From NCBI GenBank assembly GCA_051530055.1, contig CM121343.1, positions 5,736,389-5,800,388 on the forward strand: a stretch of DNA of 64,000 nucleotides, in the 5' to 3' direction. A program made the translations under genes and the position numbers. This DNA comes from Neoechinorhynchus agilis (Eukaryota; Animalia; Acanthocephala). This document shows positions 12,827 to 62,118 of this stretch, one piece after another. How positions within the stretch are numbered: the stretch's first letter is position 1; the number at the start of each line of letters is the position of its first letter. The notes under the pieces are model-generated. The model worked only from the letters and a program-made list of their open reading frames with translations. It had not been told where the DNA came from and ran no database searches.

Positions 12827-12995
12827 TCTCTAGTATGTGGAATTATTGTTTAGAAGTGTACACCCGCGGTAAATGATTATTTCGATTAAAGAGACATTCC
12901 GAACCTTTTCCCGCGAGTGTAGACTTCTAAACAATAATTCTCTAATCACATTCCCCCCGGTACCTCCTCGCACATATCGACATCTCTAGTATGTG
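12827..12995 (+). mobile_element. Foldback element A1 (internally deleted), with 13-bp TSD
   Basis: TCTCTAGTATGTG at 12827-12839 and 12983-12995; arms GAATTATTGTTTAGAAGT / ACTTCTAAACAATAATTC; 42-nt tail ending ...CCTCCTCGCACATATCGACA, shared with A2-A4. Confidence 0.85.
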
Positions 12996-13030
12996 TTCTT
13001 TGGTGATTATAAAAATAGAGACTGATTTAT

Positions 13031-13073
13031 TGATCTCAATATTTCATCCGTCTCATCGGACTTCTTCGGATCA
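13031..13073 (-). ncRNA. Hammerhead relic (U4C) downstream of a PLE GIY-YIG fragment
   Basis: UGAUC-CCGAAGA-A-GUCCG-AUGAGA-CGGAU-GAAA-UA-UU-GAGAUCA. Confidence 0.65.
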
Positions 13074-13149
13074 GGTAGGGCAGGGTGGCTTTATCCTGAG
13101 TTTTAGCCTATAATCCGCCTTATTTGATTAGAGTGTATCATGGTGGTCT

Positions 13150-13642
13150 ATTTACATCGCTCCAATGATCATTATGGAACACCTCCACCAAATAAATAAT
13201 TCAACGATCACCCGTGTATATCGATCGTCACTCCGCATCAGTACACTGGCGTTGTCAAAATCAATCTCGTGGTTTGATGTTGAGTGACTCACCACTGCCG
13301 AGCTTTTGTCCGTTTTCTTGTTGTCAGCGTTTAGATGCTCACCAAACTTGCGTCGTAGATTGTTAGTCTGCCCAATATAGACTTATGGACAGTCTCTGCA
13401 AGGTAACTCATAGACCGATGGTGGGCTCGCCGGAGTTCCACTCTCCGCCTATTGTGGATCACCATTGGGATTTCCACCAGTCCCTGCTGCCTATCAATGT
13501 TCAGGGTTCGTAACAAATCTGCCAGGAAAGCGTAATGGCCCTCGAAGTCCCAACCGACATAGTTCTGCTGGGTAGTCCCGTATTTTAGTTTCCCACTACG
13601 GGGAAGCGTGGTTGGATTTCCGACATCGTCGTCGTTGGCCAC
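13150..13642 (-). mobile_element. Decayed Penelope-like element (linker plus GIY-YIG C-terminal part); a second piece lies at ~13845-13905
   Basis: Frameshifted translation DKSSAV.../SNHEIDFDNASVLMRSDDRYTRVIVELFIW resembles PLE endonuclease ends; an HHR relic follows ~100 nt downstream. Confidence 0.65.
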
Positions 13643-14859: not shown

Positions 14860-15060
14860 TGGGATACATTAATAGTGCCCAATGAGGAAGTGCGAAAGCA
14901 GTTTGCTGTCGAGCCGATCGAGGAAGCAATCGCTAAGAGACGGATACGATGGTACCTACAGGTGACACAATCAGATGAAGACGCAGCTCGAGGGGAAGGC
15001 CCAAGAAGAGGTGGAAGGACAGTGTGAGCAGAGATTTCAAGACGTTGGGAAAGAAAAACA
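14860..15060 (+). mobile_element. 3' remnant of an RTE-like LINE ORF
   Basis: PNEEVRKQFAVEPIEEAIAKRRIRW then, after a frameshift, GRPKKRWKDSVSRD: the characteristic post-RT C-terminal motif of RTE-type LINEs. Confidence 0.75.
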
Positions 15061-15687: not shown

Positions 15688-15849
15688 GAAAATCCTTCGC
15701 GATGCTGGATATGTGGTGATCATAATACCCCCAGGACAGAGAATGTTTTATTGATTTTAGATGCATTTAAAAACAACAACCAATGAGACTTCTTCTTTCG
15801 AAATATTCAATAAAATATTTTTCATCCGCTGGGATTATGATCACCACGT
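15688..15849. mobile_element. Degenerate foldback element C1 with an HHR relic
   Basis: Inverted arms GTGGTGATCATAAT...TTTTATTGA (15713-15753) and TCAATAAAA...ATTATGATCACCAC (15807-15847); internal ATGAGACTTCTTCTTTCGAAATATT; no TSD found. Confidence 0.6.
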
Positions 15850-15991: not shown

Positions 15992-17423
15992 TTAATCTCT
16001 TCTTCGGAACAATACTGCTGGAATTTGTTTGTCCTTGTGGCAGTTATCGCATACCCATATAGCATATCTCTCGGCTTTGAGTGCAAGAGCAGCTTCTTTG
16101 GTTAGACCGACACATTCTCGATGATAAAAAAAATCGCAGCCTCCTTCGCATAGTATTGAGTCATCTGGGTCCCCTTCAGCGGGTTGACGGCATACTCCGC
16201 ACAATAGCACCGGCGGGGCATTTGGGTTCACGGTATTTATCAGCATATTTTGTTTTAACATAAGTTTCAATGGTAAAGAATTATTCATAAGAAACCTATG
16301 TACTGGGCTGTCATAATGTGTCTAGGATACTGCGGGAGATGATGTCTAGCAAACGGTAAAACGTATTGACCGGAAGGGTGCAACTGAACAACGCTATCTT
16401 TGTTCGTAATGCTGCGATCTGGCAGCATTGGTGGTGGCGGTGGCAGTGGTGGTTGTTGTTGCATAGCGTTTTGGTGAGGCGCAAAAGGTGGAGGGATAAA
16501 CGGGATCATTCTAGGAGAGGGCAAAATAGCACTGCTGACTGACCTAAGATGTGGCGTTTGATCAGATAAACAAGGTGGGTTGTTAGCTAACAACATTTCA
16601 GTTCCAACGAAGCACTGCCTTGAATGCTGTTGGTGATTATTAGGATTATACATATCGAAAGTTGCCTGGTAACTGCTATAAGCTGGAGATACACCTCCCG
16701 TGATCAATTGCTGCTCCCGAAGGTTGGCGGATATTACGCAAGGATTCTCGGTTGGATGTTGTTGTTGAATGTGTTGCATCATGTGCCTTGAGTTAGTTGA
16801 CTCGTATATCTGCTCGTTGGGAGCTTCTGACGATGCCACGATGCTCATGGCCTGAGTGTTCATCATATCGGTGGCGTACGTAATATCGCTATTAAAGCAA
16901 GTGCTGTCCTGAGTCATCAAGTGCAAGAAATATCGATTTAGAAAAATCGGAACCACACACCACGAAACTAAATAAGGAGCGCAGACGCACATTCCTATTA
17001 GAAACCACGGAGGTCCTCCTCGGAATGCTTTCGACCATGTACGTCGAGCTGCGTAAAGACGGCACCAGACTAATAATGCTCCCATTATCGATATTCCTTG
17101 ACGAGTATAAAATCCATATGCGAAGCAGAGAGTCCGCCACAAGTAGTGTTGTTGTTGGTCGCCATTGCGTACCGTTGATTGTCGATTCCCGAAAGGGATG
17201 AAACGAATGAAGCCGTACCTATGACGCCCGATAGATTATTGCTTATTGTGATGGTCGTCGCGTTTTGTTCAGCGTAATTCAATTGGGTTTTCTCGTCGTC
17301 TTCTTCGCTGACGGGAGGAAGCGATCCCGACTCTTCTTGAGGACCGTTGCCATCGGATGTGCTAGGACTCGATATACTCGGATCACCTGGCATCCTGAGC
17401 ATTCCAGAAGGGGACGTCGACAA
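15992..17423 (-). CDS. pygo: Pygopus (Pro/Gln-rich N-terminal region plus C-terminal Pygo-type PHD finger); first ATG at 17402; probable intron 17172-16889; junction to the PHD frame unresolved
   Basis: CGVC...DDSILCEGGCDFFYHRECVGLTKEAALALKAERYAIWVCDNC is the Pygo PHD signature, located at the C-terminus. Confidence 0.8.
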
Positions 17424-17550
17424 GTGATAGTCGTTATAATTGTCCCGAGTCTGTGAGGAACCTGTATGTGGTTTGGCAATGTCAAACCGATGATCAACTG
17501 ACGGCTATTGGCGTGTTAAGGAACCTCGACTACTAGCAGAGCCATCGAAA

Positions 17551-17571
17551 CAACAACAACAACAACAACAA
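17551..17571. repeat. (CAA)n microsatellite upstream of pygopus (also in the duplicate at ~35519-35540)
   Basis: Direct reading. Confidence 0.9.
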
Positions 17572-18170
17572 ATTAGCTACTGCAAATAGCTAAAACGAAC
17601 ACAAACACACGTTTTGCCTGAACCAAAAGCAATTAAAGTCGGGGGAGTGGGGCAAACGCATTCCGACGATTTTACCCACACTTCCTCTGGTGCATTTCGG
17701 AGAAAAGCATTTCCGGGGAAATGGAAAACAAAGATGTTCCTCCGTTGAGGGCGATTGGAATACGTTATCGCGTAAGATTCTCAGTATCCGCGAAACATCT
17801 AATTGAGGACCCAAGTACCATCGCCGGAAAACTTAAAGCCTCCTAATGCACGGAACCTTGGCGAAACGGAAATAGCGCAGACAAGCCGTTCCCAATGCTA
17901 TCAATCTTTTCATATGGTGCCAAGCTATCAATTGCCTCTCTCGCTCGCTCCTCTACACTTGGCTAAATAGCTGTCTAATAGGACCATCTATAAAAACAAT
18001 GGGGAACAAGCCTTGAAATTGATAAATTTCGCAAATATTCAGGTCAGATTTCTCAAGGACTCGATCCTGGACGAAATCATCATAAAAACGGTACAAATGG
18101 ATACTTGGTGCTTTGCTCAAAGGTCTACGTTTTCCTTGGAATATTCCAATAATTCCAAAGCGATGGCAAT

Positions 18171-18397
18171 GTCGATATGTGAAAGGAGGTTCCGGGGAAT
18201 GTGATTAGACTTATTTTCTAGAAGTCTTTACCCGGTAAATGGTTTTTTCGATTAAAGACGTTCTGTGAACCTTGTCAGGTTCATCATCCTTGTTCAAAAC
18301 TTACTAACAAACTAAGATGATGAATCCCTTACGAGGTTCGCAGAACGTCTTAAATAAAAACCAATTTTCCAAGTGAAGACTTCCAAACAATAATTCC
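18171..18397 (-). mobile_element. Foldback element A2 (two antiparallel HHR-derived arms with altered cores)
   Basis: Tail GTCGATATG...GGGAATGTGATTAG followed by a ~190-nt imperfect palindrome; flanking direct repeat CAATAATTCCAAAGCG(A/G)TGG at 18147-18166 and 18388-18407. Confidence 0.85.
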
Positions 18398-18733
18398 AAA
18401 GCGGTGGTTAACCTTTTAAAAGTCAAGAAGGCGACTAAGAACAAAAGGCACTCTGGATGCTTCTTACCCGATGTACCGTGCATTTCAGCATCTCCCTCCT
18501 GTGACATTGCGATTAGAACTGAATGAAGCGTTCACGAATCTTAAACCGCTCTCTCGTTCTGAAAATAGTCACATCGCCCGAATTTCAGCGATCAGCGTGT
18601 CTTTCTGACTGCTGCTGTCGTTTTGGTACGTCTATAAAGGTAATGACGGAGAAATCATAGCCGATTTTTCAGTAGGATTAAATCACACAATCGAGATTGT
18701 GCCGGAGAAATATCGATTTTTCAAACTTCATTC

Positions 18734-20258
18734 GGATCCTTAAATACCCCCGAGGAGGCGGGACTCATCAGTGAGTTTCCACTTTTTTAAAGTGTTCAAG
18801 TGACCATAATTAAAAGGCTGATTATTTTGCTTGGACATACAGCCCTCCGATTCATTGGTCAGGGAAACTCATGAAATTACTTGATGCCCTGAACCATGAA
18901 GTTATGAGTTTTGTATGCATCCCTCCGGATCCTTAAATACCCCCGAAGAGGCGGGACTCATCAGTGAGTTTCCACTTTTTAAAATGTTCAAGTGACCATA
19001 ATTAAAAGGCTGATTATTTTGCTTGGACATACCCCCGATTCATTGGTAGGGCTCATGAAATTACTTGATGCTGTGCGGTTATGAGTTTTGTACGCATCCC
19101 TCCGGATCCTTAAATACCCCCGAGGAGGCGGGACTCATCAGTGAGTTTCCACTTTTTTAAAGTGTTCAAGTGATCATAATTAAAAGGCTGATTATTTTGC
19201 TTGGACATACAACCCACCGATTCATTGGTCAGGGAAACTCATGAAATTACTTGATGCCCTGAACCATGCGGTTATGAGTTTTGTACGCATCCCTCCGGAT
19301 CCTCAAATACCCCCGAGGAGGCGGGACTCATCAGTGAGTTTCCACTTTTTTAAAGTGTTCAAGTGATCATAATTAAAAGGCTGATTATTTTGCTTGGACT
19401 CACCCGATTTGGGAAACTCTGAATCTTGATGCCTGACATGTTATGAGTTTTACATCCCGATCCTAAATCGAGGAGGCGGGCTCATCGTGGTTTCCTTTTT
19501 TAGTGTTCAGTGACATTAAAGGCTGATTATTTTGCTTGGACATACAACCCACCGATTTATTGGTCAGGGAAACTCATGAAATTACTTGATGCCCTGAACC
19601 ATGCGGTTATGAGTTTTGTACGCATCCCTCCGGATCCTCAAATACCCCCGAGGAGGCGGGACTCATCAGTGAGTTTCCACTTTTTTAAAGTGTTCAAGTG
19701 ATCATAATTAAAAGGCTGATTATTTTGCTTGGACATACAACCCACCGATTCATTGGTCAGGGAAACTCATGAAATTACTTGATGCCCTGAACCATGCGGT
19801 TATGAGTTTTGTACGCATCCCTCCGGATCCTTAAATACCCCCGAGGAGGCGGGACTCATCAGTGAGTTTCCACTTTTTTAAAGTGTTCAAGTGACCATAA
19901 TTAAAAGGCTGATTATTTTGCTTGGACATACAGCCCTCCGATTCATTGGTAAGGGAAACTCATGAAATTACTTGATGCCCTGAACCATGCGGTTATGAGT
20001 TTTGTACGCATCCCTCCGGATCCTCAAATACCCCCGAGGAGGCGGGACTCATCAGTGAGTTTCCACTTTTTTTATGTGTTCAAGTGATCATAATTAAAAG
20101 GCTGATTATTTTGCTTGGACATACAACCCACCGATTCATTGGTCAGGGAAACTCATGAAATTACTTGATGCCCTGAACCATGCGGTTATGAGTTTTGTAC
20201 GCATCCCTCCGGATCCTTAAATACCTCCAGAGGAGGCGGGACTCATCAATGAGTTTCC
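18734..20258. repeat. Tandem array, ~8 x 193 bp (units 2, 4 and 5 shortened by scattered deletions)
   Basis: GGATCCT(T/C)AAATAC recurs at 18734, 18927, 19104, 19297, ~19459, 19632, 19825, 20018 and 20211. Confidence 0.95.
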
Positions 20259-26700: not shown

Positions 26701-27015
26701 TGCAAAGATCTCTTTTACAATAGTACCAACTTTAGGTTCCCGTACTGAAATCCCGTTGTCATAGCAGCGTCCGCGCCTTTCTCTATCTCCTTAGTGGTCC
26801 ATGCGCTGATCTTCGTCCGACTTTCAAAATTCGTTGCAACGAGCACCAAATTCAAATACCTAGAGAAATCGAATGAAAGCATTCATGAAGCAAACTCAAA
26901 ATGAACAAGCGCCTTACAAAGCAATAAAAGACAATGAAACTATTCAGTGAACTTTAGGTACATTGATTCGGTTTAAAAAATCCGGTGTTGATCTCTCGAT
27001 ATGCGCAAATAAGTA

Positions 27016-27068
27016 TTTATTAAAGACGTTTCGAACCTCGTCGGGTTCATCATCAGTTCTTAAATAAA
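27016..27068 (-). ncRNA. Minimal type I hammerhead ribozyme with a fully canonical core (family A)
   Basis: UUUAUUUAAGAA-CUGAUGA-U-GAACC-CGACGA-GGUUC-GAAA-C-GUC-UUUAAUAAA: 5-bp stem II, bulged 9-bp stem I, loop-less ACGU stem III; predicted cut 3' of 27025. Confidence 0.8.
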
Positions 27069-27114
27069 GTTTAGCTGTGAACAAAGTAGCGTCAATGAGA
27101 CATTGTTCGCACTT

Positions 27115-30100
27115 CACACATTTCATCCCATGTCCGGCACCGCCATGCAACTCGGTTCGAAAAATTAATGTTCTTCGTCGAAAGATGCCTTAACACTGAC
27201 CTATCAAACACATTAATTTGAAGATCGTCCAGACGATTATCGAATTCATGAAAAAGCTATTAAAGTCAAAAGTAGTTCAAGAACATTTGAATAAAGTCAA
27301 AATCGGTTGATTACATTGGCTCAGAAGCGCTCCATTCAGAGCTAAAAGTGTCCAGCGAGCATTTTGGAACCCTTAACCCGGGTTTCGCAGTAGATTTCAC
27401 ACATTTCATCCCATGTCCGGCACCGTTATGCAACTCGGTTGGAAAAATTAATGTTCTTCGTCGAAAGATGCCTTAACACTGACCTATCAAACGTATTAAA
27501 TTGTAGATCGTCCAGGCGATTATCGAATTCATGAAAAAGCTGTTAAAGTAAAAAGTAGTTCAAGAACATTTGAATAAAGTCAAAATCGGTTGATTACATT
27601 GGCTCAGAAGCGCTCCATTCAGAGCTAAAAGTGTCCAGCGAGCATTTTGGAACACTTAACCCGGGTTTCGCAGTAGATTTCACACATTTCATCCCATGTC
27701 CGGCACCGTTATGCAACTCGGTTGGAAAAATTAATGTTCTTCGTCGAAAGATGCCTTAACACTGACCTATCAAACGTATTAAATTGTAGATCGTCCAGGC
27801 GATTATCGAATTCATGAAAAAGCTGTTAAAGTAAAAAGTAGTTCAAGAACATTTGAATAAAGTCAAAATCGGTTGATTACATTGGCTCAGAAGCGCTCCA
27901 TTCAGAGCTAAAAGTGTCCAGCGAGCATTTTGGAACCCTTAACCCGGGTTTCGCAGTAGATTTCACACATTTCATCCCATGTCCGGCACCGTTATGCAAC
28001 TCGGTTGGAAAAATTAATGTTCTTCGTCGAAAGATGCCTTAACACTGACCTATCAAACACATTAATTTGAAGATCGTCCAGGCGATTATCGAATTCATGA
28101 AAAAGCTGTTAAAGTAAAAAGTAGTTCAAGAACATTTGAATAAAGTCAAAATCGGTTGATTACATTGGCTCAGAAGCGCTCCATTCAGAGCTAAAAGTGT
28201 CCAGCGAGCATTTTGGAACCCTTAACCCGGGTTTCGCAGTAGATTTCACACATTTCATCCCATGTCCGGCACCGTTATGCAACTCGGTTGGAAAATTAAT
28301 GTTCTTCGTCGAAAGATGCCTTAACACTGACCTATCAAACGTATTAAATTGTAGATCGTCCAGGCGATTATCGAATTCATGAAAAAGCTGTTAAAGTAAA
28401 AAGTAGTTCAAGAACATTTGAATAAAGTCAAAATCGGTTGATTACATTGGCTCAGAAGCGCTCCATTCAGAGCTAAAAGTGTCCAGCGAGCATTTTGGAA
28501 CCCTTAACCCGGGTTTCGCAGTAGATTTCACACATTTCATCCCATGTCCGGCACCGTTATGCAACTCGGTTGGAAAAATTAATGTTCTTCGTCGAAAGAT
28601 GCCTTAACACTGACCTATCAAACGTATTAAATTGTAGATCGTCCAGGCGATTATCGAATTCATGAAAAAGCTGTTAAAGTAAAAAGTAGTTCAAGAACAT
28701 TTGAATAAAGTCAAAATCGGTTGATTACATTGGCTCAGAAGCGCTCCATTCAGAGCTAAAAGTGTCCAGCGAGCATTTTGGAACCCTTAACCCGGGTTTC
28801 GCAGTAGATTTCACACATTTCATCCCATGTCCGGCACCGTTATGCAACTCGGTTGGAAAAATTAATGTTCTTCGTCGAAAGATGCCTTAACACTGACCTA
28901 TCAAACGTATTAAATTGTAGATCGTCCAGGCGATTATCGAATTCATGAAAAAGCTGTTAAAGTAAAAAGTAGTTCAAGAACATTTGAATAAAGTCAAAAT
29001 CGGTTGATTACATTGGCTCAGAAGCGCTCCATTCAGAGCTAAAAGTGTCCAGCGAGCATTTTGGAACCCTTAACCCGGGTTTCGCAGTAGATTTCACACA
29101 TTTCATCCCATGTCCGGCACCGTTATGCAACTCGGTTCGAAAAATTAATGTTCTTCGTCGAAAGATGCCTTAACACTGACCTATCAAACGTATTAAATTG
29201 TAGATCGTCCAGGCGATTATCGAATTCATGAAAAAGCTGTTAAAGTAAAAAGTAGTTCAAGAACATTTGAATAAAGTCAAAATCGGTTGATTACATTGGC
29301 TCAGAAGCGCTCCATTCAGAGCTAAAAGTGTCCAGCGAGCATTTTGGAACCCTTAACCCGGGTTTCGCAGTAGATTTCACACATTTCATCCCATGTCCGG
29401 CACCGTTATGCAACTCGGTTGGAAAAATTAATGTTCTTCGTCGAAAGATGCCTTAACACTGACCTATCAAACGTATTAAATTGTAGATCGTCCAGGCGAT
29501 TATCGAATTCATGAAAAAGCTGTTAAAGTAAAAAGTAGTTCAAGAACATTTGAATAAAGTCAAAATCGGTTGATTACATTGGCTCAGAAGCGCTCCATTC
29601 AGAGCTAAAAGTGTCCAGCGAGCATTTTGGAACCCTTAACCCGGGTTTCGCAGTAGATTTCACACATTTCATCCCATGTCCGGCACCGTTATGCAACTCG
29701 GTTGGAAAAATTAATGTTCTTCGTCGAAAGATGCTTAACACTGACCTATCAAACGTATTAAATTGTAGATCGTCCAGGCGATTATCGAATTCATGAAAAA
29801 GCTGTTAAAGTCAAAAGTAGTTCAAGAACATTTGAATAAAGTCAAAATCGGTTGATTACATTGGCTCAGAAGCGCTCCATTCAGAGCTAAAGGTGTCCAG
29901 CGAGCATTTTCGAACACTTAACTCGGGTTTCGCAGTAGATTTCACACATTTCATCCCATGTCCGGCACCGTTATGCAACTCGGTTCGAAAAATTAATGTT
30001 CTTCGTCGAAAGATGCCTTAACACTGACCTATCAAACGTATTAAATTGTAGATCGTCCAGGCGATTATCGAATTCATGAAAAAGCTGTTAAAGTAAAAAG

Positions 30101-30522
30101 TAGTTCAAGAACATTTGAATAAAGTCAAAATCGGTTGATTACATTGGCTCAGAAGCGCTCCATTCAGAGCTAAAAGTGTCCAGCGAGCATTTTGGAACCC
30201 TTAACCCGGGTTTCGCAGTAGATTTCACACATTTCATCCCATGTCCGGCACCGTTATGCAACTCGGTTGGAAAAATTAAGTTCTTCGTCGAAAGATGCCT
30301 TAACACTGACCTATCAAACGTATTAAATTGTAGATCGTCCAGGCGATTATCGAATTCATGAAAAAGCTGTTAAAGTCAAAAGTAGTTCAAGAACATTTGA
30401 ATAAAGTCAAAATCGGTTGATTACATTGGCTCAGAAGCGCTCTATTCAGAGCTAAAGGTGTCCAGCGAGCATTTTGGAACCCTTAACCCGGGTTTCGCAG
30501 TAGATTTCACACATTTCATCCC
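27115..30522. repeat. Tandem array, 12 x 283 bp, highly homogeneous
   Basis: CACACATTTCATCCC recurs at 27115, 27398, 27681 and so on to ~30508; the repeated 61-aa ORFs in the track reflect it. Confidence 0.97.
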
Positions 30523-33948: not shown

Positions 33949-34285
33949 TTGAGCATTCGTGAAGGCCAAAGCGGTGCGGTATATAGAATACCTTGCTCGG
34001 ATTGTGATCGCTGCTATATTGGCCAGACGAATTACTTTGGGAGGAGGATGAAGGAACTCCGCTGTTGTTTCCAGGCCATAAGATCGATATTAACCACGGA
34101 TATTTGTTGGTACGCAAACGTGTTATTATCGAGGCCATGTTCATTCAGGGAGCCAATACTTTCGAAGGAAACAAGACAGATTATTCCCTAAAGTTGAGAA
34201 TACCTCCTGACAATGAGGCTGCAAAATTCCTTTTCAGATAATTGACTGAAGAAGTCCAGCGTGATTAGAAGAAATATTCCAATTA
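33949..34285 (+). mobile_element. Penelope-like element 3' remnant: GIY-YIG endonuclease plus degenerate HHR (34239-34285)
   Basis: GAVYRIPCSDCDRCYIGQT...RRMKE and RKRVIIEAMFI, then UAAUUGA-CUGAAGA-A-GUC...GAAA-UA-UU-CCAAUUA. Confidence 0.85.
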
Positions 34286-34836
34286 AAGTGATTCTTTGAT
34301 TGACGAAGAAATTAAAATGATTTTAAAATCCGTGATAAATTTTTTCGAAAAAGAATCGGCAGTTTTAAAACCAAAATCATCATTTAATTTCTCTACGCCG
34401 TATAAAACAACCCATTTATGAACAATTCAATCTTCAAACATTATTTTCCATGAAGATAGGTTAATCGTTATTTGACCGATTTTGAAACTATGGAATGCGG
34501 ATTTGGTGACGTCGAAGGTATGTCCGTTACGATCTATATCCGTACAATTATGAGGTACGGATTCGTTTTCGTCTCAGGAAATCTACTATTAGCGCTGATC
34601 GGAAATTACGACCTTCCTTTCGATCATTGCGATGATAGAATTTATAATAATAACACATTTTATTGTTGTAAACAGAGAAAACATGTCCTTATCTGGGCCC
34701 TCCTCGTGAGCACTCGAGTTCTGATTTGTCAAACGAATACGGTTGTGGTTGGAGTATCCGGTCATTGGATATCCCTTCCGTTGGCAATTAAAGGTTATTG
34801 TTTGTGAGAGATTTATTTGATTTTGGTTGGTTTTTA

Positions 34837-36280
34837 ATCGAAAAACCCATTTACCGGGTAAAGACTTCTAGAAAATAAGTCTAATCACATTCCCCGGAAC
34901 CTCCTTTCACATATCGACATTGCCATCGCTTTGGAATTATTGGAATATTCCAAGGAAAACGTAGACCTTTGAGCAAAGCACCAAGTATCCATTTGTACCG
35001 TTTTTATGATGATTTCGTCCAGGATCGAGTCCTTGAGAAATCTGACCTGAATATTTGCGAAATTTATCAATTTCAAGGCTTGTTCCCCATTGTTTTTATA
35101 GATGGTCCTATTAGACAGCTATTTAGCCAAGTGTAGAGGAGCGAGCGAGAGAGGCAATTGATAGCTTGGCACCATATGAAAAGATTGATAGCATTGGGAA
35201 CGGCTTGTCTGCGCTATTTCCGTTTCGCCAAGGTTCCGTGCATTAGGAGGCTTTAAGTTTTCCGGCGATGGTACTTGGGTCCTCAATTAGATGTTTCGCG
35301 GATACTGAGAATCTTACGCGATAACGTATTCCAATCGCCCTCAACGGAGGAACATCTTTGTTTTCCATTTCCCCGGAAATGCTTTTCTCCGAAATGCACC
35401 AGAGGAAGTGTGGGTAAAATCGTCGGAATGCGTTTGCCCCACTCCCCCGACTTTAATTGCTTTTGGTTCAGGCAAAACGTGTGTTTGTGTTCGTTTTAGC
35501 TATTTGCAGTAGCTAATTTGTTGTTGTTGTTGTTGTTGTTTCGATGGCTCTGCTAGTAGTCGAGGTTCCTTAACACGCCAATAGCCGTCAGTTGATCATC
35601 GGTTTGACATTGCCAAACCACATACAGGTTCCTCACAGACTCGGGACAATTATAACGACTATCACTTGTCGACGTCCCCTTCTGGAATGCTCAGGATGCC
35701 AGGTGATCCGAGTATATCGAGTCCTAGCACATCCGATGGCAACGGTCCTCAAGAAGAGTCGGGATCGCTTCCTCCCGTCAGCGAAGAAGACGACGAGAAA
35801 ACCCAATTGAATTACGCTGAACAAAACGCGACGACCATCACAATAAGCAATAATCTATCGGGCGTCATAGGTACGGCTTCATTCGTTTCATCCCTTTCGG
35901 GAATCGACAATCAACGGTACGCAATGGCGACCAACAACAACACTACTTGTGGCGGACTCTCTGCTTCGCATATGGATTTTATACTCGTCAAGGAATATCG
36001 ATAATGGGAGCATTATTAGTCTGGTGCCGTCTTTACGCAGCTCGACGTACATGGTCGAAAGCATTCCGAGGAGGACCTCCGTGGTTTCTAATAGGAATGT
36101 GCGTCTGCGCTCCTTATTTAGTTTCGTGGTGTGTGGTTCCGATTTTTCTAAATCGATATTTCTTGCACTTGATGACTCAGGACAGCACTTGCTTTAATAG
36201 CGATATTACGTACGCCACCGATATGATGAACACTCAGGCCATGAGCATCGTGGCATCGTCAGAAGCTCCCAACGAGCAGA
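34837..36280 (+). repeat. Inverted segmental duplication of 16809-18253 (pygopus promoter and 5' part, plus the left end of element A2)
   Basis: All ORFs in the track are identical between the two copies; identity ends after AACGAGCAGA (36280/16809) and after AATCGAAAAA (34837/18253). Confidence 0.95.
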
Positions 36281-36687: not shown

Positions 36688-39514
36688 CTCAAACTCAGCT
36701 CCTACTCTCCTTCTCTCTCCTATTCTTCATTTAGGATTCAGTGGTCTCAAGAAACTAAATTTATCCGTATAACAGTACAACAGTTTGCATGTGAAATAAA
36801 AAAGGGGTCGTTTACTGGTCTTATTTAGCAAAATGACCGAAACGAACAAAAAGAAATGTATGATTCTCAAACGTAATTTTAAGAGAGGGAGAGAATGGGT
36901 ATTAAGGAGCTTAGAGATCACTCAAAATCAGCTCCTACTCTTCTTCTCTCTCCTATTCTTCATTTAGGATTCAGTAGAGTCTCAAGCAACTAAATTTATC
37001 CGTATAACAGTACAACAGTTTGCATGTGAAATAAAAAAGGGGTCGTTTACTGGTCTTATTTAGCAAAATGACCGAAACGAACAAAAAGAAATGTATGATT
37101 CTCAAACGTAATTTTAAGAGAGGGAGAGAATGGGTATTAAGGAGCTTAGAGATCACTCAAAATCAGCTCCTACTCTTCTTCTATATCCTATTCTTCATTT
37201 AGGATTCAGTAGAGTCTCAAGCAACTAAATTTATCCGTATAACAGTACAACAGTTTGCATGTGAAATAAAAAAGTGGTCGTTTACTGGTCTTATTTAAAA
37301 ATGACCGAAACGAACAAAAAGAAATGTGATTCTCAAACGTAATTTTAAGAGAGGGAGAGAATGGGTATTAAGGAGCTTAGAGATCACTCAAATCAGCTCC
37401 TACTCTTCTTCTCTCTCCTATTCTTCATTTAGGATTCAGTGGTCTCAAGCAACTAAATTTATCCGTATAAAGTACAACAGTTTGCATGTGAAATAAAAAA
37501 AGGGGTCGTTTACTGGTCTTATTTAGCAAAATGACCGAAACGAACAAAAAGATATGATTCTCAAACGTAATTTTAAGAGAGGGAGAGAATGGGTATTAAG
37601 GAGCTTAGAGATCACTCAAAATCAGCTCCTACTCTCCTTCTCTCTCCTATTCTTCATTTAGGATTCAGTAGAGTCTCAAGCAACTAAATTTATCCGTATA
37701 ACAGTACAACAGTTTGCATGTGAAATAAAAAAGGGGTCGTTTACTGGTCTTATTTAGCAAAATGACCGAAACGGACAAAAAGAAATGTATGATTCTCAAA
37801 CGTAATTTTAAGAAAGAGGGAGAGAATGGGTATTAAGGAGCTTAGAGATCACTCAAAATCAGCTCCTACTCTTCTTCTCTCTCCTATTCTTCATTTAGGA
37901 TTCAGTAGAGTCTCAAGCAACTAAATTTATCCGTATAACAGTACAACAGTTTGCATGTGAAATAAAAAAGGGGTCGTTTACTGGTCTTATTTAGCAAAAT
38001 GATCGAAACGGACAAAAAGAAATGTATGATTCTCAAACGTAATTTTAAGAAAGAGGGAGAGAATGGGTATTAAGGAGCTTAGAGATCACTCAAAATCAGC
38101 TCCTACTCTCCTTCTCTCTCCTATTCTTCATTTAGGATTCAGTAGAGTCTCAAGCAACTAAATTTATCCGTATAACAGTACAACAGTTTGCATGTGAAAT
38201 AAAAAAGGGGTCGTTTACTGGTCTTATTTAGCAAAATGATCGAAACGGACAAAAAGAAATGTATGATTCTCAAACGTAATTTTAAGAAAGAGGGAGAGAA
38301 TGGGTATTAAGGAGCTTAGAGATCACTCAAAATCAGCTCCTACTCTCCTTCTCTCTCCTATTCTTCATTTAGGATTCAGTAGTCTCAGGCAACTAAATTT
38401 ATCCGTATAACAGTACAACAGTTTGCATGTGAAATAAAAAAGGGGTCGTTTACTGGTCTTATTTAGCAAAATGACCGAAACGAACAAAAAGAAATGTATG
38501 ATTCTCAAACGTAATTTTAAGAAGAGGGAGAGAATGGGTATTAAGGAGCTTAGAGATCACTCAAAATCAGCTCCTACTCTCCTTCTCTCTCCTATTCTTC
38601 ATTTAGGATTCAGTAGAGTCTCAAGCAACTAAATTTATCCGTATAACAGTACAACAGTTTGCATGTGAAATAAAAAAGGGGTCGTTTACTGGTCTTATTT
38701 AGCAAAATGATCGAAACGGACAAAAAGAAATGTATGATTCTCAAACGTAATTTTAAGAAGAGGGAGAGAATGGGTATTAAGGAGTTTAGAGATCACTCAA
38801 AATCAGCTCCTACTCTCCTTCTCTTCCTATTCTTCATTTAGGATTCAGTGGTCTCAAGCAACTAAATTTATCCGTATAACAGTACAACAGTTTGCATGTG
38901 AAATAAAAAAGGGGTCGTTTACTGGTCTTATTTAGCAAAATGACCGAAACGGACAAAAAGAAATGTATGATTCTCAAACGTAATTTTAAGAGAGGGAGAA
39001 TGGGTATTAAGGAGCTTAGAGATCACTCAAAATCAGCTCCTACTCTCCTTCTCTCTCCTATTCTTCATTTAGGATTCAGTAGAGTCTCAAGCAACTAAAT
39101 TTATCCGTATAACAGTACAACAGTTTGCATGTGAAATAAAAAAGGGGTCGTTTACTGGTCTTATTTAGCAAAATGATCGAAACGGACAAAAAGAAATGTA
39201 TGATTCTCAAACGTAATTTTAAGAAAGAGGGAGAGGATGGGTATTAAGGAGTTTAGAGATCACTCAAAATCAGCTCCTACTCTTCTTCTATATCCTATTC
39301 TTTATTTAGGATTCAGTAGAGTCTCAAGCAACTAAATTTATCCGTATAACAGTACAACAGTTTGCATGTGAAATAAAAAAGGGGTCGTTTACTGGTCTTA
39401 TTTAGCAAAATGATCGAAACGGACAAAAAGAAATGTATGATTCTAAAGGGTAGTTTTAAGAAAGAGAGGGAGAGAATGGGTATTAAAGAGCCTAGACATC
39501 GTTCAAACTCAGCT
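36688..39514. repeat. Tandem array, 12 x ~235 bp
   Basis: CTCAAA(A/C)TCAGCTCCTACTCT recurs every 228-237 bp. Confidence 0.97.
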
Positions 39515-51248: not shown

Positions 51249-51279
<31 letters not shown>

Positions 51280-51953: not shown

Positions 51954-54900
51954 CTATTCGCTTTCATCACTTCCGTTTTGCCAATGTCCACCGGCTTCAG
52001 CGGTGGTACCAAGTCCATATTCCGGCCTGTATTGTTCGTCCACAACTGTTTCCGATACGTCTTCGTCATCCGGTCGAATCACTGCCGATATGAAATGATC
52101 CATCGCGTTGTTGATGTCGTTGGCACACTTGCAAAGATCCGTAAATGACAACTTTTGCACACTAGACAATTCATTATCCAATTCCCAATGATTTATGTGA
52201 TCCGATGGCATGTCTTTCGCCATGATTGGAGGTGACATTGAGCGTCCCGTCTTATATGATGCACCTTTTGCATTCAAATTTGATGCAGACATAAATCGTA
52301 ACTAATCATGTCGAAAATAACAAAACAATAAGCGAATAGAGTATATACAGACCCCTTCATAAGACCGGTCAACACTTCCGTTACCATAATTATAGGATCT
52401 CGTTTTATTTAGTCGTTGCCGGAGCTGCCGAAGTTGTAAGTCTAATCGCACATTCTGTAGCTCCACAAGCCTCATTCTATTATCTATCTTATCCCTGCAG
52501 TGAACAATGCTTTCCCTATCGACTTTGTTTGTCTGCTGACTATTACTGCTAGCATTGTTGATTAAATCAAAGCAACTGCGGCAGTGTCCGGCTAAAAGCT
52601 TTTTGCATTCGTTCCTTAGTTCTCGGTTTTCGTGCTCTAATTGAAAGATAGTCCTCTCGACCAAAAGATCGTGTGTATTGCAAGTAAGGCGTTCTTCGCA
52701 GTCAGTTGCTTTAGCTCTTGCGTGCTCATTATACAGCTCACCATTTATTTCGGATGTTATGCTCGCTCCGGGTGGAAAGGTACTTCTTGGTGTTATCGCA
52801 CGGACTCATGCATTATGGGTTACAATTAGTAAAAAAACAAGAAATTATTTCCTCAATCTCCATAAGCCCGTGCTTTTATTCGCGCATCATTTCCAGCGAT
52901 TGGTATTTCATCATTGACCAGTGCTGCATCCATTCCCATCAATACGAGCGTTGAATTCCTGCCATCATGGTCAAAATTTCGAGGAAGAGGAAGGTACCCA
53001 AGACGCCGAATTCCGTCAGTGCCGATTCTAGCTCCGCATATGGCAGTAGTCGCGATTGAACCAGCGCACTGGAAATGAGATCCGTTCATGGGACCGGTTT
53101 TTTTTAGCTTATTTAGAATCACACGAACGAAATCTTTAAAATTGTCAGCGGACGTTGTCTAAAGAGGTGTTAGTGTGTACAAAAACGCGGTAAATTTTAC
53201 CTCAATATAATACTCATGGAGTGGATCATCAATCTTGAATCTATTGTTTTGCTTCGCGAATAAAAAGCAGTGCTGGCAAACATCGAAGTTAAACCGCCGA
53301 AGCGATCGGTAACTTTATTCAAAGTAGCACATAGTGAGCTCGTTTCATTCTCCATATCTAACAATGCTTACCGAAAACCAACCATCGGATACTGTTTACA
53401 GACGTTACATTTCGCTTGGTGCATGGTCTGCTCACTGACGACTAAACGATGCATGACCGGTAACCAAACAAGGGATTGTGGCTCCTCTCGCAACCAAGCA
53501 AGAAATTCTTGAATTGTCACACGCATGCAATTGTTTACTATTGGGTCGGATTCACATTTCACCTATACGAAAATTCACTACAAAGAAAAAGCGAGGTGAA
53601 ATACACACGAATTTTATTAAACATCGCAACGATGGCTCGGCTCGACTTCCACCAAACGCGGCAACCTCGCCGAGTAGTTTCGGGATCTACAAATGAGATC
53701 TTTCTGAGCTTCAAGTCGACAAATTGGTTTACAGACTATCAGTGCGCTCTCAATAATAATGCAAAATACATTTATAGAAATGGTCTGTTCCAGTTTATTA
53801 AGACTTGCGGTCTCATATATATCTAGAAAATAATGCCGATGGTTCAGATGAAATAGATAACGGTTGACCTACACTTGTACTTATCGTCCAAATTGGCTTG
53901 GCACATGATTGCTAAAGCTACTTTAAATGAATAGATATTTAAGAATCCGTTCCTATTCCTTAGGTTCATTGAGTAGTATGTGCGGTTCCAAAGATTGCTG
54001 CGAAAATAGAGTTAAATAATGGAGCATGTTTCTGCGTCCTATTCTGCAATATTAATTGTTTATAGGATAATTGTTAAGAATACAAAGGTGAAAAAAAAGA
54101 AATTTCAAAGACTGCCAACATATCCTTAACACCAAAGCTCGAATTGAAAAACTATTGCTAAATAAAATAGATGAAAACGTCGATATGCGAGGAGGTACCG
54201 GGGGAATGTGATTAGAATTATTATTTAGAAGTCTTCACCCGGAAAATTAGTGTTTATTAAAGACGTTCTGCGAACCTCGTAAGAGGTTCATCATCTTAGT
54301 TTGTTAGTAATAGACGCAACCAACAAACTGAGATGATGACCCCTTACGAGGTTCACAGAACGTCTTTAATAAAAACTAATTTTCCAAGTGAAGATTTCCA
54401 AACAATAATTCCAAAATAAGAGCCGAATAACGGATTGAACGTATTGTATCGTTTCCCGCATATGAATATTTTTCGAGTTCAGGTGAATTCGCGTACTTTT
54501 TTACTTCGAAAACAAAAAAAATTACGGTTTTCGCATGATCAGAACCGCATGGATTATTTAAGGGAGATTAATAAAATCGATTTAAGTATAATCAGAGACA
54601 CCGCGATCGGATTTATGTGATTGCGCGACTTAGCAAAAAGGGCAAAAACCAGTGGTAATCGCTTGAAAGATGAAAATCAGCAACCATTTGCCTATTTGGG
54701 CGTCATAGTACGCAGAAATATCATCGATTATTTCACTCAAAATTCAACAAGTGAATTGTCGTACTCATCGTATAAATTTAAAAGCCAATTCAGGCACAAG
54801 TCAGTGGCCAAGGGTACATTGATAGTGGACATTGGATATGCCACTGCAGCCGCTTCATACATTCTTCGTAACACAGTCAATATACGCGTTGCGCTCACGG

Positions 54901-58093: not shown

Positions 58094-58146
58094 AGTTTTA
58101 TATGACTGATGAGGTGAGTTTACATCGTGAAATGTCTCAAATAACT
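58094..58146 (+). ncRNA. Candidate minimal type I hammerhead, solo
   Basis: AGUUUUAUAUGA-CUGAUGA-G-GUGA-GUUUACA-UCGU-GAAA-U-GUC-UCAAAUAACU; stem I is long and stem II is wobble-rich. Confidence 0.6.
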
Positions 58147-59205
58147 AAAAAATGTCATGCCCGGCAGTATACTAGCCACAATTCTAATAAAATAGCATCT
58201 TGGAGAAAAAGGAATACGGAAATAACCTTTTGTTTCATCGCTCGAATGGGATAGCAAAGGTTAAATTTGTCGTTTTTATATTTACGCAAAAGTCGAGCTG
58301 AAAATGTCCTATATGAATAGGATTTGCATACTATTCAGCTAGTTTTTATAGTAGATCATTCCCGATCCTGTATTTATTAAGCTTAGTTGGAAGTTAGCTC
58401 AAAAATGATGAAATTCAATCACAGATTCATATCACCGGTTTTAGTAGCGGCAACAGCTTCATTTTTAACTTGTCACTTAGTGTTAAATCTAGTAACCGTA
58501 GGCCTGTTCCGTAAGCCTAACTCAATGCATTTCATCGTTGCTCTCCACCATGAATGCTATAATAATGAAATGCTCGTTACCACCCTTTCATCGTTTGCTT
58601 TATATCATATTCCACAAACTATAGACATCTTCCACTGAGCACATCTGAAATATCAGGGTGGAAAGATCATTGGTGAATTCGACACGTAGCTGCTATCCAT
58701 TTGGGTTGGTCACTGCTTTCTGAACTTATTGCATTCTTAATATCGATTTGGAAGGAGTCTTCGGTTGCACAGGTTAAAAAGAAAAATTAATTTACAGAAA
58801 AACTTATCCAGGTTATTAGTAGAAAATACGCTATTCTTGCAGTCAAGAACCTGGAAAGCCTTAAAACGGTATACTTATTCACGTTAGCTTCGAGGTAATT
58901 AAATGAGCAAAATAAAAGAGTAGATAAAGTCGTCGCTGGCGATTCAAATCGGTGTCGAAACGTAAATGGTCGATCAAAATTAAAACAAGGTTAATACTAA
59001 ACAAAGAATCAGCTCATCGATTATCATCCGAAGCGACTGTAAGAACCTTTGGTGGTCCGTCTCGTCGGACTTCAAGTTTCTTATAAGTTTTCTACTATAT
59101 AAGCCTGAGAACAATAAATATCTAGTTAAAGATAAAATCCATGAGTATGTGGCGATGCGGGAAAAAATTATATCTCCCTACCACCACAAACCAAAGAACA
59201 CATAA

Positions 59206-60854
59206 ATGAACAACTTTACAAGAACATCTACTGCAGTTGATAGTGTAAAATTACCGCCTGGACGCTCGGTCATGAAATCACTAGACTTCTCGAACTTAAA
59301 GAAGCATACTCCTATAATTGCATGATTGATTGGTTTTGGGAAAAAGATTAGCTGTTTAAAAACGGAGATATTTTCTCAATGGAATCAAACAACCATTACT
59401 GTATCTTCAAGAGAAAATCCTTCGGGGTGATTTTGATGTGGTGATCATAACCCAAGGACGCAGGATTACGAGCGGAAACCTCGAGAATGGCTACAAACTT
59501 CTTAAGTGACTTGGACGAGGCTTCCTAATCTTTCGATGAACAACTTTACAAGAACATCTACTGCAGTTGATAGTGTAAAATTACCGCCTGGACGCTCGGT
59601 CATGAAATCACTAGACTTCTCGAACTTTAAGAAGCATACTCCTATAATTGCATGATTGATTGGTTTTGGGAAAAAGATTAGCTGTTTAAAAACGGAGATA
59701 TTTTCTCAATGGAATCAAACAACCATTACTGTATCTTCAAGAGAAAATCCTTCGGGATGATTTTGATGTGGTGATCATAACCCAAGGATGCAGGATTACG
59801 AGCGGAAACCTCGAGAATGGCTACAAACTTCTTAAGTGACTTGGACGAGGCTTCCTAATCTTTCGATGAACAACTTTACAAGAACATCTACTGCAGTTGA
59901 TAGTGTAAAATTACCGCCTGGACGCTCGGTCATGAAATCACTAGACTTCTCGAACTTTAAGAAGCATACTCCTATAATTGCATGATTGATTGGTTTTGGG
60001 AAAAAGATTAGCTGTTTAAAAACGGAGATATTTTCTCAATGGAATCAAACAACCATTACTGTATCTTCAAGAGAAAATCCTTCGGGATGATTTTGATGTG
60101 GTGATCATAACCCAAGGATGCAGGATTACGAGCGGAAACCTCGAGAATGGCTACAAACTTCTTAAGTGACTTGGACGAGGCTTCCTAATCTTTCGATGAA
60201 CAACTTTACAAGAACATCTACTGCAGTTGATAGTGTAAAATTACCGCCTGGACGCTCGGTCATGAAATCACTAGACTTCTCGAACTTTAAGAAGCATACT
60301 CCTATAATTGCATGATTGATTGGTTTTGGGAAAAAGATTAGCCGTTTAAAAACGGAGATATTTTCTCAATGGAATCAAACAACCATTACTGTATCTTCAA
60401 GAGAAAATCCTTCGGGATGATTTTGATGTGGTGATCATAACCCAAGGATGCAGGATTACGAGCGGAAACCTCGAGAATGGCTACAAACTTCTTAAGTGAC
60501 TTGGACGAGGCTTCCTAATCTTTCGATGAACAACTTTACAAGAACATCTACTGCAGTTGATAGTGTAAATTACCGCCTGGACGCTCGGTCATGAAATCAC
60601 TAGACTTCTCGAACTTTAAGAAGCATACTCCTATAATTGCATGATTGATTGGTTTTGGGAAAAAGATTAGCCGTTTAAAAACGGAGATATTTTCTCAATG
60701 GAATCAAACAACCATTACTGTATCTTCAAGAGAAAATCCTTCGGGATGATTTTGATGTGGTGATCATAACCAAAGGATGCAGCATTACGAGAGGAAACCT
60801 CGAGAATGGCTACAGACTTCTTAAGTGACTTGGACGAGGCTTCCTAATCTTTCG
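59206..60854. repeat. Tandem array, 5 x 330 bp
   Basis: ATGAACAACTTTACAAG at 59206, 59536, 59866, 60196 and 60526. Confidence 0.97.
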
Positions 60855-61872
60855 AACTATCGGATTGTGATTATCATGTCCGTTATCGCACTGTGGACCA
60901 ACATACAGAAGTGACGACCTCATTACCACCCCCCCCTCGCGCGCTCGGATATGTTTGTGGTTCGCTATTTGCGCGCTATTCCACAGCTTCCATCCAGTTT
61001 AGTTACGACTTTGCGGACGGTTTCAGAAAATGGACGCTGATGAAGTATGTGTTTTGTCGGGTATTCAGGACGATCAGAGTACCATTCAACTTTTCGAGAA
61101 GCAGGTTAGATCGTCTTCTGAGGGATTTGTTTGAACTCTTTTTAGGATCATTATCTTTCGTTCGGTTGCAGTGCCATTAAGCTTGCCAAGCACTATTTTA
61201 AATCGCCGACTGCTTTGTCAACCACAAATTTGGAAGGTAACTTCTCCTCATTCGCACAGTGCAACTTAATTTCATACAGGTCAGTCGGTGAAATCGTGTT
61301 GTATCAAAAAATCAGCGCTGGAGAGCGTTTTGCACTTCATATTGAACCGAATGCTGTGTCGGGTGGAGATTTGGAGTGAAACTAAGCAACTGAAAAAGAA
61401 ACTTTTATGTATAGTTAGTTTAATGATCTTTGCCTTATTATGAAGATCATCTACATTATTGGCATCACCCGGAAACATTGGTGAAATCGAGGAGTATTTA
61501 GCCACAATGAATCTTGATTCAACCGACATTCATTCGTTTTATGGAGATGGCGACATTTTGTCGTTTTGCGCTAAAACCGATGATACAGCCAAAGGCCATC
61601 GACATGGAACCGTAAGTTCTGCCTACCTTGTCCTCTTAAATTTCTTACCTTACGTTGATTTGCTCCAAAAAGCAATACTAAAATCCCATCAATTATTGAT
61701 TTTGTAGCACGTCCTAAGAATAATTAGTTTAAAATTTTTTGTCATGGATATATATTTTTTGTTTGGTAATGAGAAATAGAGATTAAAAGGTAGGTCAGGA
61801 GGGTGGCACCCTGTTTCTACCTTTTAGACCTGAAAATGTCTGACGAAATTTTGTGAAAGGAAATCAATAAAT

Positions 61873-62118
61873 TAATCTCTATTTGGAATTATTCTTTAGG
61901 TCGTCACCTAGTAAATAATTGTTTATTGAAGACGTTTCGAACCTCGTCGGGTTCATCATCCATGTGCAAAACTTACTAACAAACTGATGATTATGATGAA
62001 CCCGACGAAGTTCGAAACGTCTTTTTGATAAATAATCATTTACCGCGGGTGTAGACCTAAGCAATAATTCCAATCACATTCCCCGGTACTTCCTCACATA
62101 TTGTCATAATCTCTATTT
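61873..62118 (+). mobile_element. Foldback element A4, with 12-bp TSD
   Basis: TAATCTCTATTT at 61873-61884 and 62107-62118; both arms carry GAACC-CGACGA-(G/A)GTTC-GAAACGTC; 35-nt tail; both CUGAUGA halves are damaged. Confidence 0.88.

Follow-up and report, generated by a model that had tools for sequence, protein, structure and literature searches.

A 64,000-nucleotide stretch of the genome of the acanthocephalan Neoechinorhynchus agilis (hereafter the window; C3:5736389-5800388 of a 46.2-Mb assembly) contains small foldback elements that belong to three families, labelled A, B and D, each present in tens to hundreds of genomic copies. The arms and tails of these elements are the 3′ ends of Penelope-like elements (PLEs), and their insertion is RNA-mediated; both conclusions are well supported. 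The elements are probably retrocopies of short RNAs from PLE 3′ ends, most of them trans-spliced to a spliced leader (SL), that were made into inverted dimers at integration.

Anatomy and abundance of the foldback elements

The common layout comprises a direct repeat, an inverted arm, an arm, a one-sided tail of 29-42 nt and a second direct repeat. All six elements of the original prediction, which was made from the letters of the window alone, lie at the positions claimed for them. Their parts are as follows, in window coordinates.

12840-12982, A1, whole element, with exact 13-bp flanking repeats
12827-12839, A1 left target-site duplication, TCTCTAGTATGTG; the exact 13-mer occurs again at 12983-12995
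12840-12905 (-), A1 tail-less inverted arm, 66 nt, from sequence reading and the inverted repeat; it reaches only the 3′ half of the hammerhead
12906-12940 (+), A1 direct arm, 35 nt, 5′-truncated
12941-12982 (+), A1 tail, 42 nt, aligning with the family A tail in a 30-copy alignment
12983-12995, A1 right target-site duplication
18170-18397 (-), A2 foldback, reverse orientation; tail 18170-18210, partial leader fossil 18301-18312 (+)
18157-18166 and 18398-18407, A2 flanking repeats AAAGCGRTGG, 10 bp with 1 mismatch
54179-54412 (-), A3 foldback, reverse orientation; tail 54179-54215, flanking repeat weak (6-7 bp)
54299-54317 (-), A3 leader fossil, 19 nt, exact, equal to the 3′ part of the 21-nt leader A
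61885-62106, A4, whole element, with exact 12-bp flanking repeats
61873-61884, A4 left target-site duplication, TAATCTCTATTT
61885-61959, A4 inverted arm; the centre follows, with a partial leader fossil at 61973-61984, then the direct arm at 61993-62071
62072-62106 (+), A4 tail, 35 nt
62107-62118, A4 right target-site duplication
62298-62513, B, whole element; arms 91% complementary, 13-bp flanking repeats with 1 mismatch
62285-62297, B left target-site duplication, ACAAATAAAAATG
62298-62382 (-), B tail-less inverted arm, with an intact minimal hammerhead (U3-A8 core) at 62348-62379 on the minus strand
62383-62479 (+), B spacer (62383-62394) and direct arm, contiguous with the 3′ untranslated region (UTR) of PLE copy L057 (1501-1599)
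62480-62513 (+), B tail, 34 nt, equal to L057 1600-1633 and absent from the inverted arm
62514-62526, B right target-site duplication, 1 mismatch
5209-6237, D, whole element, with exact 12-bp flanking repeats at 5197-5208 and 6238-6249
5197-5208, D left target-site duplication, ATAAATCGATTT; right copy at 6238-6249
5209-5237 (-), D tail, 29 nt
5238-5248 (-), D 3′-terminal arm segment, followed by eight 109-bp head-to-tail units at 5249-6116 (-)
6094-6124 (-), D centre, a full-length 31-nt leader-D fossil joined to the hammerhead exon
6125-6237 (+), D inverted tail-less arm, hammerhead core mutated

The layout recurs in all three families, as had been claimed, except that D is built as an inverted arm, eight tandem 109-bp units and a tail, and holds no two-arm hairpin. 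Each D unit consists of a leader-D fossil (~27 nt), a minimal hammerhead and ~50 nt. The tail occurs on one side only, measuring 42, 35, 34 and 29 nt in A1, A4, B and D by the boundaries adopted here. Direct repeats of 12-13 bp, predicted throughout, are exact in A1, A4 and D and carry one mismatch in B, but reach only 10 bp with a mismatch in A2 and 6-7 bp in A3. The arms of A, B and D are mutually unrelated, in line with the expectation that the families share no sequence; the tails depart from it, with the 10-mer CTCCGAGGAA exact in both B and D and the motif CCGG.ACCT...ACAT common to A and B.

A first look at the genome gave 850 candidates for family A, 34 for family B (tandem arrays among them) and 276 for family D. 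With up to 3 mismatches allowed, the tail of family A matches the genome 250 times and its reversed control not once; whole-genome read depth on family A arms is ~100-fold above that of the flanks. A pile-up of reads on family A also occurs at window 62089. A further 58 loci were picked only by a near-exact family A tail, ~51 of them independent. This tail-anchored sample comprises ~34 loci with an inverted arm, ~12 solo copies and 5 that run into PLE sequence, so that minimal units outnumber longer copies by ~9 to 1.

Arms and tails are PLE 3′ ends

In families A, B and D alike, the arm and tail together correspond to the final ~110-135 nt of PLE copies in which a GIY-YIG ORF (open reading frame) lies directly upstream. 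Two PLE copies share the family B end, L054 and L057 (L numbers denote genomic loci, C numbers contigs). The right arm and tail of B are 93% identical to L057 1501-1633, the last 133 nt of that copy, and the matching part begins 27 nt past the stop codon of ORF pieces in which the GIY-YIG signature GVYRIPCKDCKASYIGQT occurs. Because the inverted arm of B matches only L057 1514-1600, the last 33 nt of the match constitute the tail. For family A, the endonuclease coding sequence, a ~110-nt 3′ UTR, the ribozyme, 48 nt and the tail are contiguous in several tail-anchored loci; the PLE-linked loci of this family are L070/L082, L073, L077, L086, L107 and L130. About 113 genomic candidates share the family A upstream region, with variable 5′ truncation. 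The ORF of L086 groups with HTH_animal and GIY-YIG clusters at 0.98 (Atlas), the piece upstream of it groups with rotifer clusters carrying RVT_1 (Atlas), and the nearest protein clusters of a PLE ORF piece are from Rotifera. For family D, an ORF end of PLE type (RLILEAIHI...), a UTR of ~150 nt, the ribozyme and the tail follow one another in L132 and L136-139.

PLEs sharing these ends were thus sought and found for all three families, with every ORF decayed. Against Pfam, the decayed ORF pieces gave only a sub-threshold GIY-YIG match, at window 33949-34188 (E = 0.002). The endonuclease remnant there (33949-34191, plus strand) comes from another decayed PLE. A 792-aa ORF near a family A copy (L062, L063) was rejected as a partner, being that of a long interspersed nuclear element (LINE) with an AP-endonuclease and a reverse transcriptase (RT). 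The two LINE copies (C2:740500-745500 and 11409600-11414600) retain this ORF intact and are unrelated to the foldbacks.

Minimal hammerhead ribozymes in the arms

The minimal hammerhead ribozymes (min-HHRs) of metazoan PLEs have CUGANGA as their core, or UUGANAA as its covariant; a single nucleotide after A9 is unpaired, helix II begins G10.1-C11.1, and GAAA runs straight into a palindromic dinucleotide (15.2-16.2) and UH (PMC4209133). The arms of the foldback families fit these features, including the missing helix III, the palindromic 15.2-16.2, the extra nucleotide after A9 and the G10.1-C11.1 pair. Because such ribozymes lack helix III, only a dimer can cleave. A descriptor built from the text of that paper matches 11 sites in the window and 0 in 100 shuffles. 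Each of the eight D units accounts for one site; the other three are in B's left arm (U3-A8), in a fragment of family A at 27025-27056, and at 58106-58136 on the plus strand, where the minimal hammerhead belongs to a fourth family. In all the DNA retrieved, the core does not vary, and helix II varies between families yet remains paired (GAACC/GGTTC, GCTGG/CCAGC, GCAAGG/CCTTGT and GGCACA/TGTGCC).

The arms had been described as hammerhead-bearing throughout. This is accurate for the left arm of B and the D units, which pass the strict descriptor, but not for A1, whose truncated arms (66 and 35 nt) hold no complete hammerhead, or for A2-A4, whose cores are mutated; helix II is mutated in the direct arm of B. 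The majority sequence of family A is an intact hammerhead motif, from which the window's own A copies have diverged by mutation. One sizeable family A subfamily has GCAGAAC for GAAAC in the core (L070, L078, L094, A2 and A3 of the window, and others, PLE-linked copies included). Since this subfamily is still copied, self-cleavage may be dispensable for these insertions. Rfam gives no hammerhead in the window at the gathering score or at E up to 10, and its sole matches are chance ones of long hairpins to miRNA hairpin models. This blank is no evidence of absence, because the Rfam models omit helix-III-less PLE ribozymes.

Spliced-leader-like exons at the inner arm ends

The inner arm ends of families A and D contain an exon of 21-31 nt that is distinct from PLE sequence at the same place. 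Most family A arms read AGCGTCTATTACTAACAAACA directly before the ribozyme, where PLE-linked copies read ...TATTTTAG, and the spliced and unspliced forms part exactly before AACTGATGATG. Family D foldbacks and arrays read ...ATTTAAAACTTACAAGCA joined to ATAGCGACTGAAGA, and the PLE-linked copies ...CTCCATTTTAG joined to ATAGAGACTGAAGA. The junction between leader and hammerhead falls exactly at the position that follows TTTTAG in unspliced PLE copies. Among 118 ribozyme 5′ halves of family A, 57 carry the leader, 18 are unspliced and 43 are truncated or unclear.

Leader A, the 21-mer AGCGTYYATTACTAACAAACA, precedes GTAAGT more than 230 times; the tandem array of 309-bp units that holds these copies lies on C2 (13.89-13.93 Mb) and contig C21. 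This candidate SL RNA gene array (L089 and L090, C2:13877800-13880200 and 13907000-13913600, and contig C21) has >230 units of 305-309 bp, each with AGCGTYCATTACTAACAAACA and then GTAAGT; a tail-like CTCCGAGGGAAC motif is also found in the unit. Leader D, the 31-mer ACGAACTCGAATATTTAAAAACTTACAAGCA, is followed by GTAAGTATTGGCG, which contains the GTAAGT donor, at ~20 dispersed loci (C1:1369265, 1422738, 1446104, 1463315 and 2308564; C2:2599972-2864644; C34; C101; seen as 35-nt windows only). Its last 14 nt are joined to at least 12 other downstream sequences, with 42 matches versus 2 for a control. In two independent foldbacks, the window's D element (centre at 6094-6124, minus) and L141, the first leader nucleotide present is the same. 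A resemblance to the bdelloid rotifer SL GGCTTATTACAACTTACCAAGAG (PMC3795323) is seen in both leaders, A sharing GC.TT.ATTAC.AAC with it and D sharing AACTTAC.AAG.

The leader A array and the leader D loci thus have what marks SL genes, a short conserved exon with a GT donor in multicopy or tandem form. Short exons with a consensus donor that fill a large tandem array and also occur fused to other RNAs at an acceptor look like spliced leaders, and we interpret them as such with good confidence. On balance we also favour the wider proposal that this acanthocephalan has SL trans-splicing with at least two leader families (one being the >230-copy 309-bp array), that its PLEs carry a trans-splice acceptor at the hammerhead, and that leader-hammerhead-tail RNAs of ~140 nt are the main PLE templates. 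A trans-spliced leader would explain why the arms end 20-35 nt upstream of the ribozyme. Our literature search found no report of an acanthocephalan SL and no paper that connects PLEs with spliced leaders.

The leader could also have been supplied by ordinary cis-splicing, in which one master gene or a few join an upstream exon to the hammerhead exon, with all later steps the same. Published work describes a cis intron in Drosophila virilis Penelope, ending at helix I of its hammerhead; moreover, leader A is followed by C or T at a single duplicated locus, and the evidence for the leaders is genomic. We regard cis-splicing as unlikely, in view of two different leaders that each precede GTAAGT in many copies, a >230-copy array of 309-bp units typical of SL RNA genes, the joining of leader D to at least 12 unrelated downstream sequences, and the resemblance of both leaders to the rotifer SL. 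By analogy with D. virilis, the presence of an acceptor shortly upstream of the hammerhead may be conserved among PLEs, and in this host the SL may make use of it. A cis mini-intron within the PLE 3′ UTR was rejected as the source of leader A, since the junction expected from L130 differs.

The end of leader D is also fused to another repeat (GCCTTYATAAAA...GAGAT), in arrays spaced 161-400 bp (C1:2287473-2445343, C3:1270806-1271487 and contig C39). This repeat may be a further leader-tagged retro-family.

Centres differ from copy to copy

Some 30 family A centres were compared, of which ~28 are unique; besides the duplicate-locus pair L019/L025, a junction is common only to L009 and L010. The usual centre has one arm complete and the other cut elsewhere, often with 2-3 nt of microhomology, and contigs of another run add about a dozen further centre types. 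Two arm subtypes recur in family A, and the two arms of a copy belong to different subtypes in 5 of 26 copies, where ~8.6 would be expected if the arms were independent and 0 if both came from one molecule. Family B has at least three junction types.

These centres bear on whether PLE enzymes reverse-transcribe a single transcript of the whole hairpin with its tail. Such copying could account for the unusual centre shared by L009 and L010, which are different loci, for the private variants found in both arms of many copies, and for the two junction types among dispersed B copies, each seen more than once; read-through RNA exists, A4 and B lying within a transcribed intron. It does not account for the uniqueness of nearly all family A centres, for arm lengths that are continuous from 0 to 107 nt with the two arms varying independently, or for the discordant subtypes. 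Both arms have leader fossils at their inner ends, as expected if each arm separately copies a short RNA. Copying of the hairpin as a unit is accordingly doubtful.

The differing centres, the discordant arms and the arm lengths of 0 to ~107 nt indicate instead that the foldback is made anew at each integration from short RNAs. We think that it is an integration product, not a heritable self-copying element. The original prediction of non-autonomous PLE derivatives reduced to their ends thus holds for the ends, which lie downstream of a GIY-YIG ORF in longer A, B and D copies; a strong form of it, with a self-copying hairpin, is not supported, given the differing centres and subtypes. For copies with private variants in both arms, same-source templates or snap-back copying are possible.

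Insertion signature

PLE insertions often have an inverted 5′-truncated copy beside the direct copy and a tail of 30-40 bp at one end only (PMC3846280, PMC8557442, PMC11167929), and the literature agrees that inverted pseudo-long terminal repeats with a short one-sided tail are an established PLE signature, as had been assumed for this window. Published PLE work also reports that, in vitro, the PLE protein extends both strands of a cut target, and that reverse transcription starts at two adjacent internal sites whose spacing equals the tail. The foldbacks match both observations: they have this layout, and the tail-less arm starts at a fixed place, ≤5 nt from the arm/tail boundary in 26 of 33 cases. 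Direct arms range from 0 to 107 nt, 21 of 46 falling between 77 and 107 nt; none in the tail-anchored sample is 108-136 nt long, and five extend past 137 nt.

Flanking repeats of family A exceed the 95th percentile of shuffled or mismatched flank pairs in 43 of 65 copies. Their tabulation gives lengths of 7-16 bp with a mode of 12 (14 cases) and no fixed short length. Frequently 0-5 T lie between the end of the tail and the flanking repeat. Past the tail most family A copies read TTTT(T)A, and the target duplications often begin with T. This T-run reflects either a preference for T-rich targets or a U-run at the RNA's 3′ end. A Pol III origin of family A was considered, on account of the B-box-like GGTTCGAAAC in the ribozyme and the frequent T-run after the tail, and was dropped because B and D have neither.

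Palindromes might also have arisen late, by DNA-level inverted duplication of solo 5′-truncated PLE 3′ ends that had been inserted first. Rearrangements do occur at foldbacks (one end of a 1.45-kb inverted duplication lies within A2), and satellites grow from these units. The flanking repeats, however, bracket inverted arm, arm and tail together in those same 43 of 65 copies, which implies entry in one event since they enclose the whole structure, and the tail-less arm starts at a fixed internal position. Late duplication is therefore very improbable.

Least credible of all is a miniature inverted-repeat transposable element (MITE) or foldback DNA transposon moved by a transposase that recognises terminal inverted repeats: the elements are small and ORF-less, with long terminal inverted repeats and a clear 12-bp mode of flanking repeats, but the one-sided tail, flanking repeats that vary from 7 to 16 bp, arms identical to retrotransposon 3′ UTRs, variable inner junctions, tail-only or solo copies, and RNA-mediated insertion with spliced exon junctions fossilised inside the arms exclude it. 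The predictions that the elements are not MITEs and that they move through RNA are both borne out, the latter by the SL-like exons in the arms.

Proposed route of integration

The template would be a short RNA of the PLE 3′ end, composed of the minimal hammerhead, ~50 nt and the ~30-nt tail. In families A and D it would mostly start with an SL exon of 21-31 nt, trans-spliced to the 3′ splice site that any PLE 3′ end has directly before its hammerhead; unspliced templates would be used too, in B and some A copies. PLE RT and GIY-YIG endonuclease would act in trans and cut the target with a stagger of ~12 bp, and cDNA would be primed on both DNA strands. The strand starting at the 3′-most site would yield the copy with the tail, and the strand starting at the internal site the tail-less copy. 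The two antiparallel cDNAs would then be joined head to head near the RNA 5′ ends, through microhomology, giving the order of repeat, inverted arm, arm, tail and repeat. Template jumping from RNA to RNA could produce the head-to-tail 109-bp units of D, and later unequal recombination could turn single insertions into satellites. The PLE origin of arms and tails, the exon junctions, ribozyme motif, flanking repeats and differing centres are read directly from the copies; we infer from them that splicing occurs in trans and not in cis, that both strands are primed, and that the cDNAs are then joined.

Several points weigh against this account. No intact full-length PLE partner was found, every RT/endonuclease copy examined being decayed by stops and frameshifts. 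Reads of one individual (one whole-genome run) gave no empty-site joint for A4 or B, a result that says little. The putative SL RNA has no Rfam match and folds no better than shuffles (z = 0.64), with a small stem that pairs the exon with the donor. The partners of leader A that start with A or G are inseparable from family A itself or from the leader array, and leader A stands before C or T only at the duplicated locus mentioned above; both leaders are seen as genomic fossils. Unspliced sequence is present in family B foldbacks and in some of family A (L009, L010, L081, L129), which shows that insertion does not require a leader. The private variants common to both arms would also fit snap-back copying of one cDNA, and central deletions after insertion could have added to the variety of junctions.

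Relation to known systems

The foldbacks share with canonical PLE insertions the inverted copy beside a direct one, the one-sided tail, the short target duplications, the hammerhead in the repeat, and palindromic or microhomology junctions. They differ in that both copies are cut to ~110 nt or less, so that only the ends remain, and in that many units begin with an SL-like exon. From MITEs, which are likewise small and ORF-less with long inverted repeats and flanking direct repeats, they differ by the asymmetric tail, the variable inner junctions, arms of retroelement UTR sequence and exon-exon junctions within the arms.

As a bare observation, such elements have been described before. In Schistosoma mansoni, minimal hammerheads were reported to occur in pairs, one on each strand and 100-700 bp apart, and were interpreted as truncated PLEs (Cervera and de la Pena 2014, PMC4209133); the ribozyme type and opposite-strand pairing are the same as here, and the U3-A8 covariant also occurs in family B. 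That paper does not give the tail, target duplications, junctions or template. Animal non-LTR (long terminal repeat) retrozymes, which are tandem hammerhead repeats, are known non-autonomous PLE derivatives (PMC7229834; bioRxiv 10.64898/2026.07.22.740005). They resemble the foldbacks in being ORF-less, hammerhead-bearing and PLE-dependent, and resemble family D in its 109-bp head-to-tail units. Retrozymes, however, consist of 170-400-nt units repeated directly in tandem, and circular RNA is formed from them; families A and B lack two or more direct hammerheads bounding an excisable unit, and only the D array has direct repeats. With one ribozyme per strand, A and B cannot release a unit-length RNA. 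The leader exon within the D units suggests that cDNAs of a spliced RNA were strung together, rather than that the units were copied by rolling circle. The foldback architecture, the opposite-strand ribozyme pairs and PLE-dependent ORF-less elements, as retrozymes, are thus already published. What appears to be new is that minimal two-end units predominate, that there is evidence for their being made anew at every integration, and that a leader exon sits at their core and points to candidate SL genes.

Three other systems offer partial parallels. L1 twin priming, in which both strands of a staggered break are primed, also gives inverted structures joined by microhomology, but its segments are adjacent parts of one RNA, whereas both arms here are the same 3′ segment. 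Short interspersed nuclear elements (SINEs) are short RNAs that carry the 3′ recognition end of an autonomous LINE and are copied in trans; they originate from tRNA or 7SL genes, whereas here the short RNA comes from the element's own transcript. Relics of spliced leaders in retroposed gene copies, for example in dinoflagellates, are likewise leader exons fossilised in DNA as proof that a trans-spliced RNA was reverse transcribed, but here the RNA that accepts the leader is the 3′ end of a retrotransposon, and the enzyme that copies it is that of a PLE.

PLE integration is the least understood mechanism of retrotransposition: the origin of the inverted or tandem repeats and of the tail is unsettled, and it is debated whether the RNA template is sense or antisense, the antisense hypothesis having been raised in the PLE literature to explain intron retention. 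Hundreds of minimal insertions provide natural records of single integration events, in which a fixed internal start of the tail-less arm, head-to-head joining near the RNA 5′ end and, occasionally, arms of two subtypes are preserved. Exon-exon junctions in the arms are only possible from a processed sense RNA, so the leader fossils, which bear on the antisense-template hypothesis, indicate that such RNA can template PLEs. If the proposed origin is correct, the leaders at foldback centres are direct genomic proof that PLEs copy sense-strand processed RNA, and each integration may use two RNA molecules, with consequences for views of PLE replication and intron retention. Acanthocephala gain candidate SL sequences and genes. 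In annotation, the units are liable to be mistaken for MITEs or for microRNA-like hairpins. Satellites also grow from them, and they are found at rearrangement breakpoints.

Genomic context, satellites and rearrangements

A4 and B share one intron (61612-62629; 1018 nt, GT..AG) in a plus-strand gene that is expressed. Contigs derived from RNA lack this intron, and the other introns of the gene are 47-56 nt long.

Family B foldbacks form arrays at L032 (C3:5693662-5694320) and L037 (C3:6454849-6457325), in which a 16-nt target-derived spacer, ACGAATATTTGTTCTG, stands before, between and after the units and is common to the two distant loci. This is the pattern expected from unequal recombination between target duplications. 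At L064 (C1:450096-452776), ~25 units of a 127-bp satellite each consist of a family A unit truncated in the ribozyme, the tail and ~30 nt of other sequence. The array was rejected as a source gene, being a satellite of a 5′-truncated unit with no complete ribozyme.

An inverted duplication of 1451 bp with 99.86% identity joins window 16809-18259 to 34830-36280 and has one end inside A2. The boundary there is ≤3 nt from the hammerhead cleavage site (GTC/TTTAAT). We do not take it as evidence of cleavage, because the ribozyme core of A2 is mutated, and the coincidence is unexplained. Further tandem arrays occupy 27113-30522 (~283 bp), 36688-39514 (~235), 59206-60855 (~330) and 18733-20258 (~193) of the window, the first of which starts ~60 bp after the family A ribozyme fragment at 27007-27056.

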